Positions 4,793 to 13,500 of a stretch of DNA of 64,000 bases are shown here, one piece after another. This stretch comes from Klebsormidium nitens (Eukaryota > Plantae > Klebsormidiophyceae). Numbering within the stretch: the stretch's first letter is position 1; each line of letters opens with the position of its first letter. The position numbers and the translations under genes are program-made. The notes beneath the pieces were generated by a model. It did no database searches. It had not been told where the DNA came from and was given only the letters and a program-made list of their open reading frames with translations. The stretch is from positions 248,001 to 312,000 of the forward strand of contig DF236965.1 of NCBI GenBank assembly GCA_000708835.1. Reading direction: 5' to 3'.

Positions 4793-6240
4793 GGTACGGT
4801 ACGCAGGTACGTGCGGGTACACTGTGCACATGGTTTATGGTACCGTGTACCTACCTAGTTCCGGTACCTACAGGCTACAAGTTACAACCTATACGCCAAG
4901 GTATCTTCGAGCGGGACTCTAACGATGCAGGTACGGTATCGTGCGCCTGAAGGTACCGTTCGAGCCGCTGCGCAGTGCCGCAGCATTACCGGTAACTCTT
5001 GTGTGACCTAACGGGCGTGTGACCTAAGATACGTGTTACCCGGGCACTTAAACTAAAAAACCTAACGCAAATAATCACCCGCTCCGCACCCCAACCCACC
5101 CTAACCACCTTACCAACCCCACCCGTCCCCCGGGTGCCTATCTTAGGTCACACGGCTCTTAGGTCACACGAGAGTGATCGGAGTGGTGCCTGCATGGAAG
5201 TTGAAGGCACTCTGCAGTGGGACTCACTGCTGCTCAAGAGTACCGTACAATTGACGGTACCTACCAGCGTTTCCCGTATTCAACGGTATTGTCAACTCAG
5301 AACTGGTCGTGCGAAGATCTTCCGTGCATGGCTTTCAATCAATCATCTGTCGTCGGCAGTGGGCACTCAGAACTCAGGCCGATTCGAGAGGACTCGGGAT
5401 TCGGGCGGATCCGAGTCGTCGTCATTGATGACTCGCGTCTCGAAGTTCGGTACGTACCAATGCACAAGCTGGCATGCTAGTTTAAGTGGTCCGTTCTCAG
5501 GCGGTAGCTACCTGCCCTGGGGACGCCGTACCGTACAAAAAGGTACTACTCCCTGCCTAGAAGTTAGAACCTGGGTAGTAGGTACGGTACCTACCGCGGC
5601 TACCGATATTTGACTTGAACTTGGGAAAACTCTACGTAGGTACGTGGCCGGTACGGTACCTACGGCGGCCTGGAGGCTGGTGCCAAATTGCCAATGTCCA
5701 AAGGCAGATACCGTCGGCCCTCGCGCCCGCAAGTGGGGTCGGGAATCGGGCCGGTTCCAGGAGAACAGTGGTTCCACGTGTACCGGTCGGCGGTAGGTTT
5801 TGATTTAGGTAGGTAAATACGGTACATTGAGGCTTGCGTACCTACTGTAGAGCTTACCGTATCGTCGGTAGGTACCGATCCAGTCCTGGGTACGTCCACG
5901 TGAGCTTCCCGTGAGCTTGGAGGCATATGTCTCAAAAGGTAGGCGCTCGAGAGGACGGAGGGTTAGTCTGGTGGTTTAAGGATAGGCTCAGTTCGAAGCG
6001 CGTGACATTGTTTGGTCAACGTTTAACTACCTAGGTTAGTCACGTAGATACTATAGCACCGGGCGGCCGAGGGCCGTCACGGTCGGCTGACTCAAGAGAC
6101 GGCGGCCGCCGGCGGCACCTATTGCAGGCACCAACCTAATACTACAGTACCGAGGTACCTACTACCGGTACCAACCTTGTTCAGCCAGTACATACTATGT
6201 ACAGCGGCCTTCGAGGGACAGGTTTGATGCATGTACGAGG
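4793..6240. other. GTAC / GTAGGTAC-rich intergenic island upstream of the SAND-FYR gene
   Basis: About 30 GTAC by manual count. Ten exact GTAGGTAC/GTACCTAC copies at 4847, 4864, 5257, 5578, 5587, 5636, 5656, 5838, 5868 and 6155. Confidence 0.85.
4995..5175. repeat. 181-bp element with 37-bp imperfect terminal inverted repeats (MITE-like or cruciform)
   Basis: Arms at 4995-5031 and 5139-5175; each arm contains GTGTGACCTAA twice. The spacer is C/A-rich. No clear target-site duplication. Confidence 0.8.
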
Positions 6241-7515
6241 GTGCGCTCATGCAGCACAATCCGCACGAGACTACTACCTACCTATGTAGTATGCTGACGT
6301 GAGGAGGGGACAAGTTTCGTGAGAGTCGAAACTTGTCACTTCGAGCCTGTATGCAATGTGCATGATGGCTCACGTGTGATACGTAGTCTGACGTCGTGAC
6401 GAACATTGAACATTGGATTCTATACATACTGAAAAGTAGGATGGGCTGAGGAGGGTCAAGCTTCTTTGTACAGATGAGGATCAACTATATAACACTCTTT
6501 ACGAAAGTACTTGATAATACTCCCACCTGCAATACTGCAACTTTAACTAGCATGTTTGGTTTATTTTGACCAACTTAGAACCACTAGCTTCTGCGCTTCA
6601 GCATGCAAGCTATCGGCCATATTGATCAAAAACATGCTCAGATTGGCCATCAGCTTTCAACCGCCCATGATGATGATTAGCTCCATCTAATCAAAAGCAT
6701 GGCGCAAATCGACATATCACACCCATGCATGTAGTGATCTGTACATTCTCTTGGTAGTACGGAGTCCAAGCTCCATAACTGGCGGACTGAAGCAATGAAT
6801 TGCACGGTCACCACAACATAAGTGGGCATGGTTGCTCAAGCCGCCATGTTTCTCAGATCCAAGGAAAGTTTTGTCGAACTTTACTACGAATAGTGAAAGG
6901 ACAACGTCATGTGAAAGTCGAACATGACATGATGCTATCAAACTGACTTCTCTCTGCACTTGTGATACAAAGTCGAACGTGCAATAGATTTTCCAGTTGA
7001 ATGAATCTGCGAAGAACTCATATGCATGCCTGGTGATAAGACTCTAGTCTTGATTGACAACGGGCAAAGGTCAATCCTTACCTGAAGAAGCACATACAAG
7101 CAATGAAAGGACCAACATTGGACGTCTTAGCTTCGATAGTCTACACCGACATGGACCTAGCCTAGCCAGCAACAATGATCTCAAGATTCAGCCCCTGGTC
7201 AAAACAATCAGAATGCGTCTTTCTGACGTTTCTATTTCACCTCTGGGCTACCAGAAACAGTCTATCGATTCTTTGACGGTCTGAAGCATGATCATGCTTG
7301 GCCGTCCCCGTTCTATTCCAGTCTTTACACTCGTCAGCAGCGCACCCAAACTTCAAACCACCGCCATACACCGACTGCAAAGCCAGCACCCGCTCTGAAC
7401 CTGCTGTATGTACCAACCTCGAGCATAATACCGTGACACCCTCTACTTTATACGCCAATATACAAGCACTCTCAGACAGAAAGGTTTTTTGGATCTTCTC
7501 AAGACCTGCTCAGGC

Positions 7516-10500
7516 TCAGTAACTGGGTATGGTGAAGTTCCGGCCCAGCAGCCCCTTGACATTGTGCACCCAGTCCTTCATGGCCAGAAACTCAAACACG
7601 TGCAGGCCGTCCCGGCCGCGCAGCTTCTCCTGCAGTGACGTCACGTTCTGGAAGAGCCGCGAGTTGTCCTCCGCCAAGCGCGAGTTGTCCTTCACGTAAG
7701 CCGCCAGCCGCATGCTCATCTCCTCCACCTCGTTCACCTTCACGGCACAACGGGTCCTCAAGAAGCTTGAGATTAGGCCGACAGACAGCGGACATGCGAA
7801 CGACACGACCCGGATCCAGAAGTGAACTTACACCTTGAACCTCCACACTCCTGGCGGCCCCGCCGGCCCGTCTTCCGCCTGACACGTGCTGCCTGGTCGG
7901 CCCTGCACTCTGACTGCTTCAACAACGTTAGTCTCAGGTTAGTATCGCTAGACCTAGGACGCGGACCGACCTGGACTGACTTGGACGACCGGTTATTTGG
8001 ACGACCGCTTACACGCACTTATGACGCGATAAACTCACCTTCTGCTCCATAGCTTGCCGGAGCTGCTTGTGCTCCAGCGTCGTGTCCGCGAGCATCTGGG
8101 ACAGCTTGCCGTTCTGCAGCATCTGCTCGTTCAGGGCCTGGCGGAGCGACACCGCCGTCGCCTCGGAGAAGGTCAGATCCTTGCAGCAGGAACCCACCCT
8201 GGGGATACGAAAACAGCCCCATCAGCAATATAAGCGGTTCTTTCTGAAAGTTAGAGGCGAGCAATCTTTCCAAACAGTACCGAAGCTGTTGAGCGTGGTA
8301 GTCTTGAGGGTGGTAGGAGCCGAACCGACGGCGCCAAGGTACAGGCCACGTCAGCAGTTGTCGAGGGGCCCAGAACGCGGTTTCTCAAGAGCAATTTTCG
8401 CGTTCTAAGATAGGAGATAGCTGAGAAGAGAATTCCGAAGCTCTTACCGACGGTCCAGGAAAGAGGCACCACAAGCTGGCAAGGCAGTAAGAAGGCGCCT
8501 AAAACTCGTCGGAAGCTCGGACTTTAAACTTGTTGGCATCTTTGAAACTCCCAACTTTTGAAGGTGACAACTGAGTCAAAAGAATCAGACGTTGGAGCTC
8601 CATTTAACCTCTATAGAGCTGTGAGTCGCCGAGAGTCAGAACCAGAGGCGGCAGGAGCAAGAGAGTGGCGGTTCGCCAGCACATCGATCGAAGCACGAAC
8701 CCAGTGTTTACGACGAGCGTCCGACCGGTCGTTCCTGGCCTCACCTGACCGGGGAGATGATCGACAGGAAGTTGAGCGCCAGCAGCAGCAGCAGCGCCGC
8801 CCCGAGGGCCAGCTTCGTGTGGTCGTCCTTCCTCCCGCGGGGGCGGCGCGTCTCTCCAGCGGCCGCCACGTCACCTGCCACGTCATCATCGGCGACCCCC
8901 TTGGTCTCCCGCGCAGCCCCTGAGACGCCGGCGGCATTCGCCAGGCTGCTCACTGCCGCCCGGGAGTTGGCCACCAGGGTGGTGCCCGCGGCTGAGAGGC
9001 GCTCGGTGATGGGTGCCTCCGGGCTGTGCTCGAGGCTGCGCACGAAGTCGGTGAAGTACTGCGACTTGAACTTGCGCAGGCGGGTCACGTTCTCCTCGAG
9101 CACCATGCTGCGGAGGAGGGAGCGGTCGCCCTTGGGGTGGCGGTGGAACGCGATGCGCTCGCTGTGGGCCGAGGCCTGCCGCTTCACCTTGACCTTGAGA
9201 GGGAAAAGGCGCACGATCAATTTCTGATTAGGGAAAGCGTGGTGCTGACGAGAAGCTGAAAGGGGCCGCATAAAACCGTTCAATGGGTCCATTTCGATAC
9301 GCAGAAGTGGACCCGCAAGGCTCAATAAAGGGGAGGCCGCGTGAACGAACTCTAGAAAAAGAAATACTTTACAGCTGGGCGAATTGCTTTTTCAAGGAGG
9401 GATGCAGTCCTGCCACGGAACTCAGCGCTCGTGGGCAGATAACATGAGTCGAACTGCGACGAGATGATGCTTCCTGAAACAGAAAGCTGATTTCATGCTA
9501 TTACCTCCTGTGTTTGCACCTTCCTTCCTATTGAGACGGGTAACGAAAGAATTATAACAAAGGCCCTGCAGGTCCTTACCTGGCGTTTGGCGCTGATCGC
9601 TCCATCATCGTCGCTGGACACGACCGAGAAGGCCTTCTCGAGCTCCTTCGTAAGCGCCGGAAAGGAGAAGGTGGTGATGCCCTTGTCCTCAAGATCCAGG
9701 GTCACGTGCTGCCGAAACTCCTGCTCCTCGGCCTCGCTCATCGAGTCGCCCTGACAAGACGGAAAAGATGCCGTGTAAGGCCACCTAAAATCTAAATTTT
9801 TCGACACGATGGACGAAACAAAAACTGCATTTGCGACTTCGCCCTTCCATGAAAGAAAGCCAAGTCCCTCAAAAAGGAAAAACACGTTCAGAACTCGTCG
9901 AAGGTTCACTTGCTCGGATAAGTGGACGGGAGGCCCGGGCGGAGGGGTGTAATGAACCACTTGGAAACGCGTTTGACGGTCTCGTGGTCATTATAAGCTT
10001 GAGTACATCAAAGTACGTCAGAAGCGGACGTTCGAAGCTCAGGAAGGACTGCAAATCTCTATGCATCCGTCAATCTTGCGTAAGACATATACCGAAAACT
10101 TCGGGAAAGGTCATTCGGCTCCATGCAGGGAAAAGATTGTCAAGAGAGGTAATTGACACCACGTCTGTTGCAAAATTCCATAAATCGAGGTCTGTGGTCC
10201 TAACCCTCACGACCGCTCTCCCGTATGAGCAAGCAGAGCCTTCAAAGCAACGTTTGTCAAGCAAAATTTACTGCCAACAACTCAGAAACCTGCCACAGTA
10301 CAGGCCAAATAGTACGAGAAGCGTGCCTGGCTAACCTTTGCAATGACTGGAACCAGCGGCGCCACCTTCCCGATTGCTGCCATGATCTCCAGGTCCACAG
10401 GCTTGATGGCGTGAGGGTTGACAAAGTACAGGACGCAGGAAACACGCTCGTCCTCGGGGCTCTCGCGCATGTAGGTCGTCCACTTCATGTAGAAGATACG

Positions 10501-13500
10501 GTTCTGCTCTGCGATGTAGTCCGTCGCAGCCTTGATCCTGTGGCAGGCGAACTAAGAGTCAGTATGCTTGAGACTTCCGGGGCTCTCTTCTCAGTACACA
10601 GCAGACTGCAGGAAGCAGACGGAGTAAAATTCTTCTTAGGTATGCAAGAAAGTCGCTATGGCACTTATATCCACGTCCCACTATCAAGAGCGGCCTTGGA
10701 ACAGCGCCTTGACTGAACAGGCTACAACTACTTCATTAGCAGTCACCAAGAATACCCAAGGAGGGGGCCCAGTGAGCACAGTGGAGCTGACAATGTGTAA
10801 TACCAGAGAAAGCAGACCATTCATGAAACGTCAACACCCACTGTCTGACGAAATAGGCTGGACTTTTGCAGATGCACTTGCCTCTTCTGCACATCGAAGT
10901 CATCTCCTGCCCCTGGCATATCAACCACCTTGTAGTGGACGCGCATCTTGCCGTTCCGTGAGAGGGTTGAGAACGTGAATGAGCCATCCGCTTCAGCGGT
11001 TGCTTGGCTGGCGTCTGGCTGGGAACCACTGCCTCCAGTAGTGCCAATTGTCAGAGCGTCAACAATGTCTTGGATGATGGTAGGCATGCCCAGGCCAAAT
11101 GCATCAGCAACCTGCAGAAAGCAAGCACTGAGGTTTCTGTGACCACGTTCCCACAGCAAGGACAGGTGCTGCATCCTTTCACTTTGCTCTGCGGGTCACA
11201 TTTTCTAGCAGACAGTTCATGTAGGCCTTTGGAAACTGAATACCGTGGAGAAAGAACATGTCTGGAATAGAGTAGAATATTCTGGATGGTTTGCTTCATC
11301 AGTAACCGCTCAATAACTGACTTGCAACGTACCATGATCTTGTGCCACACGTGCTGGACGTCATCAGAGGCTTCTTCCTTCTTGGCATCGTCCACTTCAA
11401 CTGCCTTCTTCACGCCGCTCTTGGCAGTCTCGCTATACTTCCTCTGCTCATCCTTGACCTTCTCAGTTCTGCTGGCCTCTTGTTGTGGTGGGGTGGGGGG
11501 TGCAAAGGACTCTCCTGCAGGACAAGCGGAGCCAAGCGGTTGTTTATGCGCAGTGCTCCTTGTGTGCAGCTCTGAAAAGCGTTAACCATTGTCTATTGTA
11601 GATTGAAATCCAGAGAAAGTAACCAACTCTGAAAACTGAGAACGTACCATTGTCTACCGTAAAGTGGATCTCTGAGAAGTAAAGAGTTGCCGCCTGATTT
11701 GACAATCAAAATTGTGATAATAGGTCTCTCTGTCATCACTCTTGTTGGGCCTGCTTCACACAACCTGTCCTCAAGATATCTGAGCACGCTCACATAAGAT
11801 GAGGCACAAGAAGGATAAAATTGCGGTCACCTGCTGGGCTCAACGCTGTCTTCGTTGTCGATGTTGGACTTGGAGCAGTCTCTGCAGCGGCTCCATCAAG
11901 GAGAAGCCACGAGCGCTGCATGGCGTCCGGATCTGAGTTGCGCGATGGGGTTTGTGAGGCAGCCAGCTTCTGTTGATCTGACGTGTCGTGCGCCATGCTC
12001 TCTGCGCGCCAAAAGACTATCAATGGTGAGCGGCGTGAGTCAAAACACCACTGTCAGGATAACTCTCTGAACAAAGCCCCAGACAAACAATCAAGACAGT
12101 AGGTCAATTCCGCAACATCCTGGAATCATCTTCCTACACGCTTACTTTTCAGCTTATGTTCTGACCTCCAACTTCATTTCAAATTTGGATTGTCCCCCTG
12201 GCACTGCCCCATTCCCTCTTGCAGCAAGTGCCCAAACACAAATTAACAAACCCAACAGGTCCCAGGAAGCACTTGCCAACAAGGCACCAGTTCCAACCTC
12301 TTGCGTTTGACCCCACTAAACTGCAGCTGAAGTTTGTCCCAAACAAGCAATCGTTTTGTTGTGACAGATACTTGCAACAATATATCAACTGGTCTGATAG
12401 AAAACGGAGCTGAACTGAACAGATTGTGGCAAAGCCACCTACATATGCATAACCCTTCATTTGCATCACGACAAGCTGCAGATATCTCAGAAAGATAGGC
12501 CATGTAGATTAGAGATACAGGTTCCACAGCGACCATTGCCATGTAAACAACAGTTTAGACTTCAACAACATTTACGGAAGTGCCAAAACCCAATTTATAT
12601 CCATGAACCTGGAAATGCTCACATGGGCAATTGCAAGACAATTGCAAAGGGCACAATGAAAAAGGTGCCCAAATGCTGCTTTAAAATTTTCCAGCATTCC
12701 CAATCAGAGCACCTTTTGCGGAAGACCTCACCAACTCAGCAGAGCTTGACAGGACAGCTACTGATTGGACAAAGTAATTGATGATCCTTTCCAGTCCTTG
12801 GACAACACTGTATCTCCAATCGCACATTGTTTAGTCAGCAAGTCACCCATTGCTCACGCCATGGACCTCTGAAAAAGAAACCTTCACCAACAGAATGCAG
12901 CGGGGCCCACCGGCTTGCAAAAGAAAGCAAAGCAGAAGCGAGGCCTGCCAAATCCAGCTAAAATCAGACAGAATAACACCTCATCTGCCCTTCTTCATCT
13001 AGCATTGTCTGCAGATTACTAACAACACCAACCTATACTCTGAAAACTTGGCCCCTGCAACAACTGCTTACCTGTCTTGACGGCACCAAGGGTTGATGAT
13101 GCAGGGGATGAAGGAGCTCCGCCTTCTGTGAACCCTCTGGAAACGGAAATGCAGGAGCGAAAGTGAAACTGAAGCGGCAACACTTGAGAGCTGCGCAGCT
13201 CTGAGAACAGTTTAAGTCTCCAAATGCCTGATTGAGGCGCCCTGCTTCTCACATCCAAGCTGAGTCTGCACAGAACTCAGGGGACCCCAAGCTCATTTTA
13301 GAAAGTTGGCCAAGGTTGGCTGCCGCGCGGCCCCAGCCGCGGACGCGCGGCGGGTCCAATCGCACGCAGGTGCGCGGTTTAGGGAAGGTATGGGCTTCAC
13401 GGACTTCAAATGCAGTCGTCCGGCGGCGCACCGTAAAACCGGAACGGAACGGCAATCGCAGGCGGCACCCAGCAGTGCTCAGCGCCCGCAGGCTGCAGTA

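Follow-up and report, generated by a model that had tools for sequence, protein, structure and literature searches.

Here we describe an expressed septin gene of the streptophyte alga Klebsormidium nitens whose product has lost the lysine and serine of the P-loop. The gene lies on the minus strand, at about 13300-7516 of a 64,000-nucleotide stretch of contig DF236965.1 (assembly GCA_000708835.1, positions 248,001 to 312,000), hereafter the window, and it encodes GAQ78635 of Klebsormidium nitens/flaccidum; each exon translation is found verbatim in the supplementary FASTA entry 'K_flaccidum_GAQ78635' of Delic et al. (2024). The protein appears to keep the core of the septin fold around a dead nucleotide pocket, in which the first Gly, the Lys and the Ser of the P-loop, the arginine finger (R-finger) and the YPWG element are missing, and it is predicted from its sequence to be a class I-type septin pseudoGTPase. 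In the reading that we favour, to which we give a probability of about 60%, GAQ78635, the second Klebsormidium septin, would be a membrane-held, non-catalytic subunit that partners the canonical septin GAQ92127 by its G face.

The elements of the pocket, which is spread over three of the coding exons (lettered A to H and listed further below), are as follows.

11079..11111, minus strand: P-loop remnant VADAFGLGMPT, with Lys replaced by Met at 11087-11085, Ser by Pro at 11084-11082, and Gly by Asp.
11112..11332, minus strand: intron between HKIM and VADAF, 221 nt, GT-AG, a single joint in four sequencing runs and no hidden exon.
10922-10911, minus strand: G3 motif DMPG, aligning with DTPG of the paralogue and other septins, invariant in orthologues.
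10413-10408, minus strand: His-Ala of FVNPHAIKPVD, His-Arg in R-finger septins.
10341-10336 and 9750-9745, minus strand: G4 motif AK/GD, spanning the exon D/E junction, confirmed by RNA; GKAD in GAQ92127.

The codons on either side of the intron that precedes the P-loop remnant can be read directly. Positions 11344-11333 of the minus strand give CAC AAG ATC ATG followed by the donor gtacgt, and after the acceptor ttctgcag exon C opens at 11111 with GTT GCT GAT GCA TTT GGC CTG GGC ATG CCT ACC ATC ATC; the peptide across the 11333/11111 junction is thus HKIM/VADAFGLGMPTII, as the first-pass annotation of the window had spliced it. When exon C is set against GAQ92127 by BLASTP (E 3e-10), VADAFGLGMPT falls opposite IAGESGLGKST, and BLASTP and MAFFT agree in placing GESGLGKS over DAFGLGMP, with the first Gly changed to Asp, the Lys to Met and the Ser to Pro. 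The motif [GA]xxxxGK[ST] is absent from all six frames across 7300-13250, so no alternative exon able to supply a P-loop is present there, and Walker A is likewise absent from every frame of the orthologous loci. RNA editing that would restore the Lys or Ser can be excluded, since the letters of the transcript contigs are identical to the genome.

Beyond G1, the pocket is a mixture of lost and retained parts. The first-pass annotation had pointed to an Ala next to the His of FVNPHAIKPVD, in the place of the arginine finger of the Chlamydomonas septin; alignments bear this out, with the PHA of the window protein opposite the PHR of Chlamydomonas 5IRR (PHRLRP) and of GAQ92127 (PHRIKP). The YPWG of the septin-unique element is missing as well, in our own and in published alignments: the region reads RQASAHSERIAFHRHPKG and contains no W-G. 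By contrast with these losses, G3 and G4 are unsubstituted, in line with the initial observation, and the S2/S3 region with its trans-loop His is present, VLYFVNPHAIKPVDLEIM aligning to CLYFISPTGHSLRPLDLEFM of SEPT3 and to 5IRR.

In P-loop GTPases, the Lys and the Ser/Thr of GK[ST] contact the beta and gamma phosphates and Mg. By this established GTPase chemistry, a protein with neither P-loop Lys/Ser nor arginine finger is very unlikely to bind and hydrolyse GTP normally. Most likely, then, GAQ78635 would be unable to hydrolyse GTP and would have little or no capacity to bind GTP or GDP.

That the gene is a septin follows most directly from exon D, which on its own matches Pfam Septin (PF00735) over profile positions 86-150 with 45.6 bits (cut-off 26.2; E 7e-12) and hits 34 solved septin chains, including Chlamydomonas 5IRR at E 6.6e-07. 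Exon C alone has no relevant match in Pfam or PDB, and its septin nature is visible only against the paralogue GAQ92127; in Pfam, exons A, B, E, F, G and H stay at noise level, the best match being ZapB for exon H at E 0.14. An exhaustive search of 1.84 billion protein representatives with exon D returned as best full-length relative a protein (54.8 bits) that exact look-up identifies as GAQ92127.1, 'putative septin GTPase [Klebsormidium nitens]'. A canonical paralogue, which the first-pass annotation had suggested looking for, therefore exists in the same organism: GAQ92127 carries IAGESGLGKST, DTPGWGD, APHRIKPID, GKAD and YPWG, and scores 119 bits on Pfam Septin. We additionally note that its ~210 C-terminal residues after the septin domain (~340-550) have no Pfam match. 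The algal septin core is thus common to Chlamydomonas reinhardtii SEP1/CrSEPT (5IRR), GAQ92127 and the window protein; however, the first two have GDSGLGKT or GESGLGKS, the PHR arginine finger and YPWG, and the window protein lacks all three.

How the transcript is spliced was read from transcript contigs of four public runs (four studies, two organism labels) placed on 7300-13250; the contig sets of these runs are transcriptome-sized, with an approximately exonic share of words. Eight joints are common to all four (13072/12001, 11831/11514, 11333/11111, 10882/10537, 10336/9750, 9580/9193, 8745/8198 and 8039/7737). The 11333 to 11111 junction, on which the reading of the P-loop depends and for which cDNA confirmation had been called for, is among them and has no second path. 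Contig depth over the gene is in the hundreds, and the genome letters are matched throughout in the four runs.

The exhaustive search with exon D found two exon-sized open reading frames, P0001 and P0002, 99% identical to exon D, but no orthologue beyond close relatives and no full-length copy of the window protein, so that GAQ78635 looks like a duplicate of the Klebsormidium lineage; a scan of metagenome contigs with exon D gave no match. The contigs compared were L001 (JGI metagenome), L002 (Logan assembly) and L003-5 (three Logan runs, 94-99% identical to L001 at the DNA level). With separate exon translations as tblastn queries, exons B to H were recovered in both lineages, and exon A too in L002, with order and splice sites conserved. 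The P-loop reads VADAFGLGMPTII in L002 (GLGMP) and VADAFGLGMHTII in L001 and L003-5 (GLGMH): Met is fixed at the former Lys position, the former Ser position varies (Pro or His), and the remaining backbone, VADAFGLGM, is invariant at a synonymous divergence (dS) of 0.8. DMPG and AKGD are likewise invariant, and the R-finger position holds Ala in the window and L002, Ser in L001 and L003-5, and never Arg. The 978 aligned coding bases give a dS of 0.21 for L002 and 0.81 for L001, with a ratio of nonsynonymous to synonymous divergence (dN/dS) of 0.10 and 0.11, respectively; exon D is the most constrained, at 98.5% identity and dN/dS of 0.006-0.018, and two introns are just 46-65% identical. Judged by these comparisons, the broken P-loop is old and stable, in a protein under strong purifying selection.

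The full gene model runs, in order of transcription:

13072..13300, minus strand: 5' leader exon; upstream ATG at 13296-13294, the start in the public model of GAQ78635; joint 13072/12001 in all four runs.
11831..12001, minus strand: exon A; start codon at 11996-11994 (MAHDTS...) likely the true one; low-complexity N-terminal extension, 83% conserved in L002 from the Met on.
11333..11514, minus strand: exon B; N-terminal extension to ...VQHVWHKIM, the strand preceding the P-loop; 61-75% identity in orthologues, with VQHVWHKIM invariant.
10882..11111, minus strand: exon C; degenerate P-loop, switch I region and G3; the exon matched by BLASTP to GAQ92127 at E 3e-10.
10538..10881, minus strand: GC-AG intron after the P-loop exon, donor GCAAGT; joint in four runs.
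10336..10537, minus strand: exon D; septin core, 67 aa, with S2/S3 region, trans-loop His and first half of G4.
9580..9750, minus strand: exon E; opens with the GD that completes G4 AK/GD, then alpha4/beta6 region with FSVVSS against septin FAVVGS.
8745..9193, minus strand: exon F; divergent septin-unique region (no YPWG), variable acidic linker, hydrophobic segment.
8039..8198, minus strand: exon G; conserved tail beyond the hydrophobic segment, 83-96% identity in orthologues.
7516..7737, minus strand: exon H; conserved C-terminal tail to ...NFTIPSY and stop codon, 85-93% identity in orthologues.

At its 5' end this model departs from the public one. Across 13071-13250 transcript depth stays near exon level and contigs of the four runs show no loose end at 13137; the annotated intron 13252-13137 thus seems to be left unspliced, in which case the upstream ATG at 13296 opens just a 15-codon upstream open reading frame (stop after ...SAWM). 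The true start is probably the ATG at 11996, from which the coding exons total 593 codons, as against 631 aa in the public model; the GAQ78635 model used by Delic et al. (2024) likewise starts 38 aa farther upstream.

Several further details of the splicing were seen along the way. The last intron (7738-8038, minus strand) is retained in a 353-nt transcript contig at 7712-8064, with a depth close to that of the spliced form in the three runs that list it; on read-through, ...AMEQK would be followed by VSLSRHKCV and a stop codon, and the conserved 73 aa of exon H would be lost. The donor of the intron at 10538-10881 is also GC in the closer relative L002 (5728-6092), and is GTGAGT in the more distant L001 (5778-6149). 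Exon F of L002 is interrupted by an additional GT-AG intron of 312 nt (7478-7789), which neither the window nor L001 has; an 8-bp direct repeat, GTGCGCAG, sits on both sides of this intron, and it has the look of a recently gained one whose target site was duplicated. Downstream of the septin gene, 5440-6175 is rich in words resembling GGTACCTAC and GGTACGGTACC, in direct and inverted orientation.

Past the G domain, the protein carries a hydrophobic segment followed by a conserved tail:

8756..8812, minus strand: transmembrane-like segment LALGAALLLLLALNFLSII, preceded by RRPRGRKDDHTK and followed by conserved GSCCKD; Kyte-Doolittle 19-residue mean 2.55.

The acidic linker after the G domain bears indels between lineages, and both ends of exon F are conserved. 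Within LALGAALLLLLALNFLSII, L001 and L003 differ from the window solely by hydrophobic-for-hydrophobic substitutions, and it is followed by the invariant GSCCKD and ~125 well-conserved residues from exons G and H. As judged by hydropathy, LALGAALLLLLALNFLSII would qualify as the hydrophobic helix that marks algal septins of Groups 6A/7 (~20 residues after the G domain). We propose that this helix near the C-terminus may anchor GAQ78635 in a membrane, and the basic cluster that precedes it suggests a cytosolic G domain.

How unusual the P-loop change is can be gauged from the published trimmed alignment of 258 rows (254 septins and four YihA outgroups), in which we counted the P-loop lysine column by eye. 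Nearly all covering rows have Lys, and eleven fungal Cdc11-type (Group 3) septins have Arg; the only non-basic residues are the Met of GAQ78635 and a Thr in Encephalitozoon cuniculi NP_586501 (GLGTST). The latter shares the loss of a basic residue at this position; however, it is a microsporidian, and hence opisthokont, Group 4 septin in which G3 is also missing from the alignment, and it is unrelated by descent to GAQ78635. Among the 254 septins, GAQ78635 is therefore the sole non-opisthokont one without a basic P-loop residue.

A comparable case is fungal. Septin pseudoGTPases of class I comprise Schizosaccharomyces pombe Spn7 and, tentatively, Saccharomyces cerevisiae Spr28, and Spn7 is predicted to bind neither GTP nor GDP, a prediction as yet unconfirmed by experiment (Hussain et al., 2023; PMC10731463). 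Like Spn7, GAQ78635 is a septin paralogue with non-conservative P-loop substitutions that exists alongside canonical septins, and for Spn7 a place at a G interface, opposite an adapted partner, has been proposed. The non-conservative pocket substitutions that define class I are found in G1 of GAQ78635, while its G3 and G4 are intact, unlike those of Spn7, which is altered in G1, G3 and G4. The two further differ in that Spn7 belongs to the fungal Group 3 septins and its expression is limited to sporulation, whereas GAQ78635 is a Group 7 septin of a streptophyte alga, expressed in ordinary RNA samples, of independent origin and bearing a transmembrane-like segment. Class II pseudoGTPases (the human SEPT6 group, yeast Cdc3) resemble it in being catalytically inactive, obligate members of heteromers (PMC10731463), but their GxxGxGK[ST] is canonical and their GTP stably bound, whereas GAQ78635 lacks the phosphate-binding residues. 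R-finger loss is also seen in other lineage-specific duplicates, the Gonium pectorale Group 6B septins and Ichthyophthirius XP_004027529, from which the catalytic Thr is reportedly missing too (Delic et al., 2024; PMC11238149); unlike GAQ78635, they retain G..GKST as their P-loop in the published alignment.

Several of these features were already on record. Delic et al. (2024; PMC11238149) place GAQ78635 in septin Group 7, list two septins in K. flaccidum, GAQ92127 with and GAQ78635 without an arginine finger, score GAQ78635 as also lacking the switch I catalytic Thr, and suggest for such duplicates lost GTPase activity and hetero-oligomers, with GAQ92127 as the partner of GAQ78635. The gene, its septin nature, the R-finger loss and the suspected loss of activity and heteromers are thus published. 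The first-pass annotation had called the gene a probable septin pseudo-GTPase, perhaps a scaffold or heteropolymer partner; that it is a septin and has lost the P-loop Lys/Ser and the R-finger stands, while its idea of lost activity within a heteromer had been anticipated by that paper and is not new. In its text we found no remark that the P-loop has lost its Lys, Ser and Gly, nor any on nucleotide binding of GAQ78635, and the paper gives neither orthologues nor selection or transcript evidence for this protein. What we add is the P-loop state and the finding that it has no equal among the non-opisthokont septins in the reference set, proof of the gene model from transcripts, conservation under selection in three lineages, and the unannotated hydrophobic segment and tail. 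On sequence grounds, the P-loop state would move GAQ78635 from a septin that cannot hydrolyse to one that probably cannot bind.

The absence of the hydrophobic segment from the earlier record may have a simple cause. The feature table of Delic et al. (2024) gives 'transmembrane then coiled coil' for some other Group 6A/7 septins and neither a transmembrane nor a coiled-coil feature for GAQ78635. However, SupFile8 of the same paper pairs GAQ78635 with UniProt A0A1Y1ITX3, which by exact look-up is GAQ92127 (K_flaccidum_14574); the two Klebsormidium accessions seem to be swapped there, and this may be the reason that no transmembrane segment is recorded for GAQ78635.

Pairing with GAQ92127 is favoured because the residues that would reach across a G interface have been retained. 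In septins, the trans-loop His and the G4 Thr contact the nucleotide of the partner across this interface (Hussain et al., 2023; PMC10731463), and GAQ78635 keeps the trans-loop His and has a Ser in place of the G4-adjacent Thr, that is, a small hydroxyl after G4, in its most constrained exon. GAQ78635 could thereby act as a non-catalytic subunit that pairs by the G interface with the canonical R-finger septin GAQ92127.

It is possible that the pocket is less empty than this. With G4 and G3 intact, the protein may still hold a guanine nucleoside or nucleotide (GDP, GMP or guanosine), perhaps free of Mg, and be dead only in catalysis, in a permanently loaded state similar to that of class II or III septin pseudoGTPases. 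The invariance of AKGD and DMPG, the extreme constraint on exon D and the fixed VADAFGLGM backbone would all fit such residual binding, and an in silico prediction for Spn7 itself favours GMP or guanosine as the ligand (Hussain et al., 2023; PMC10731463). However, the phosphate- and Mg-contacting Lys and Ser/Thr are now Met and Pro or His, the Ser-equivalent even varying by lineage, and G4 and its neighbours may instead be conserved for the cross-interface contacts; we consider residual binding unlikely, though it deserves to be kept in mind.

A role outside septin filaments is quite improbable. GAQ78635 would then be a membrane-anchored adaptor whose septin-like G face binds other partners, such as the TOC-type GTPases at the chloroplast envelope. 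In favour of this, P-loop, R-finger and YPWG, all of them elements of the G interface, have changed heavily, a strong transmembrane-like segment is joined to a conserved and unexplained tail, Chlamydomonas SEP1 has been reported to bind TOC GTPases via related G domains, and TOC GTPases have been proposed to derive from algal septins (2026 preprint). On the other side, Pfam returns Septin for exon D but no AIG1/TOC match up to E 1, and the trans-loop His and S2/S3 region are as in assembling septins.

Finally, pseudogene decay, or a gene model that overlooks the true P-loop exon, might be suspected from exon C matching no family or solved structure by itself, but both are excluded for all practical purposes by eight junctions that abundant contigs of the four transcript studies share without a letter differing, a frame intact in three lineages at dN/dS ~0.1, and the lack of Walker A in all frames of this gene and of the orthologous loci.

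The favoured reading, a dead-pocket partner of GAQ92127 held at a membrane, does have observations that weigh against it. The perfect conservation of G3 and G4, unlike in Spn7, means that some guanine-nucleotide or nucleoside binding could persist. The published loss of the catalytic Thr in GAQ78635 may depend on the alignment: ungapped BLASTP sets the Thr of TAEADGS, kept in all lineages, opposite the Thr of PPT-LAIDQS in the paralogue, which by its spacing is likely the switch I Thr. The ~128 residues beyond the hydrophobic segment are unusual for a tail anchor. A crude test of heptad periodicity on exons G and H gave no support to a coiled coil in the tail and was not significant (436 and 68 of 500 shuffles, respectively, reach the observed score), and for exon H the ESM Atlas gave recognition under threshold, with generic coiled-coil neighbours only. 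Furthermore, a word search with the matching piece of GAQ92127 in the related lineages yielded just one 55%-identical fragment, and orthologues of the partner were not found by it.

Heteromers that include permanently inactive septins are believed to have arisen on several occasions; to our knowledge, only the fungal and animal cases have been examined. A tentative extension of our reading, speculative as it stands, is that a nucleotide-free septin arose independently in streptophyte algae, tethered to the membrane by its own helix and seated on the G face of GAQ92127 without an arginine finger. If true, such a subunit would hold its partner GAQ92127 in the GTP state and fix the order of subunits, and the Spn7 of fungi and the SEPT6-type subunits of animals would have in it a convergent, membrane-integral counterpart at the simplest stage, that of a two-septin system. 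The Klebsormidium pair of one canonical R-finger septin and one dead-pocket septin would be a minimal natural system in which to ask what a nucleotide-free subunit contributes to assembly, and how homomeric R-finger septins became ordered heteromers.

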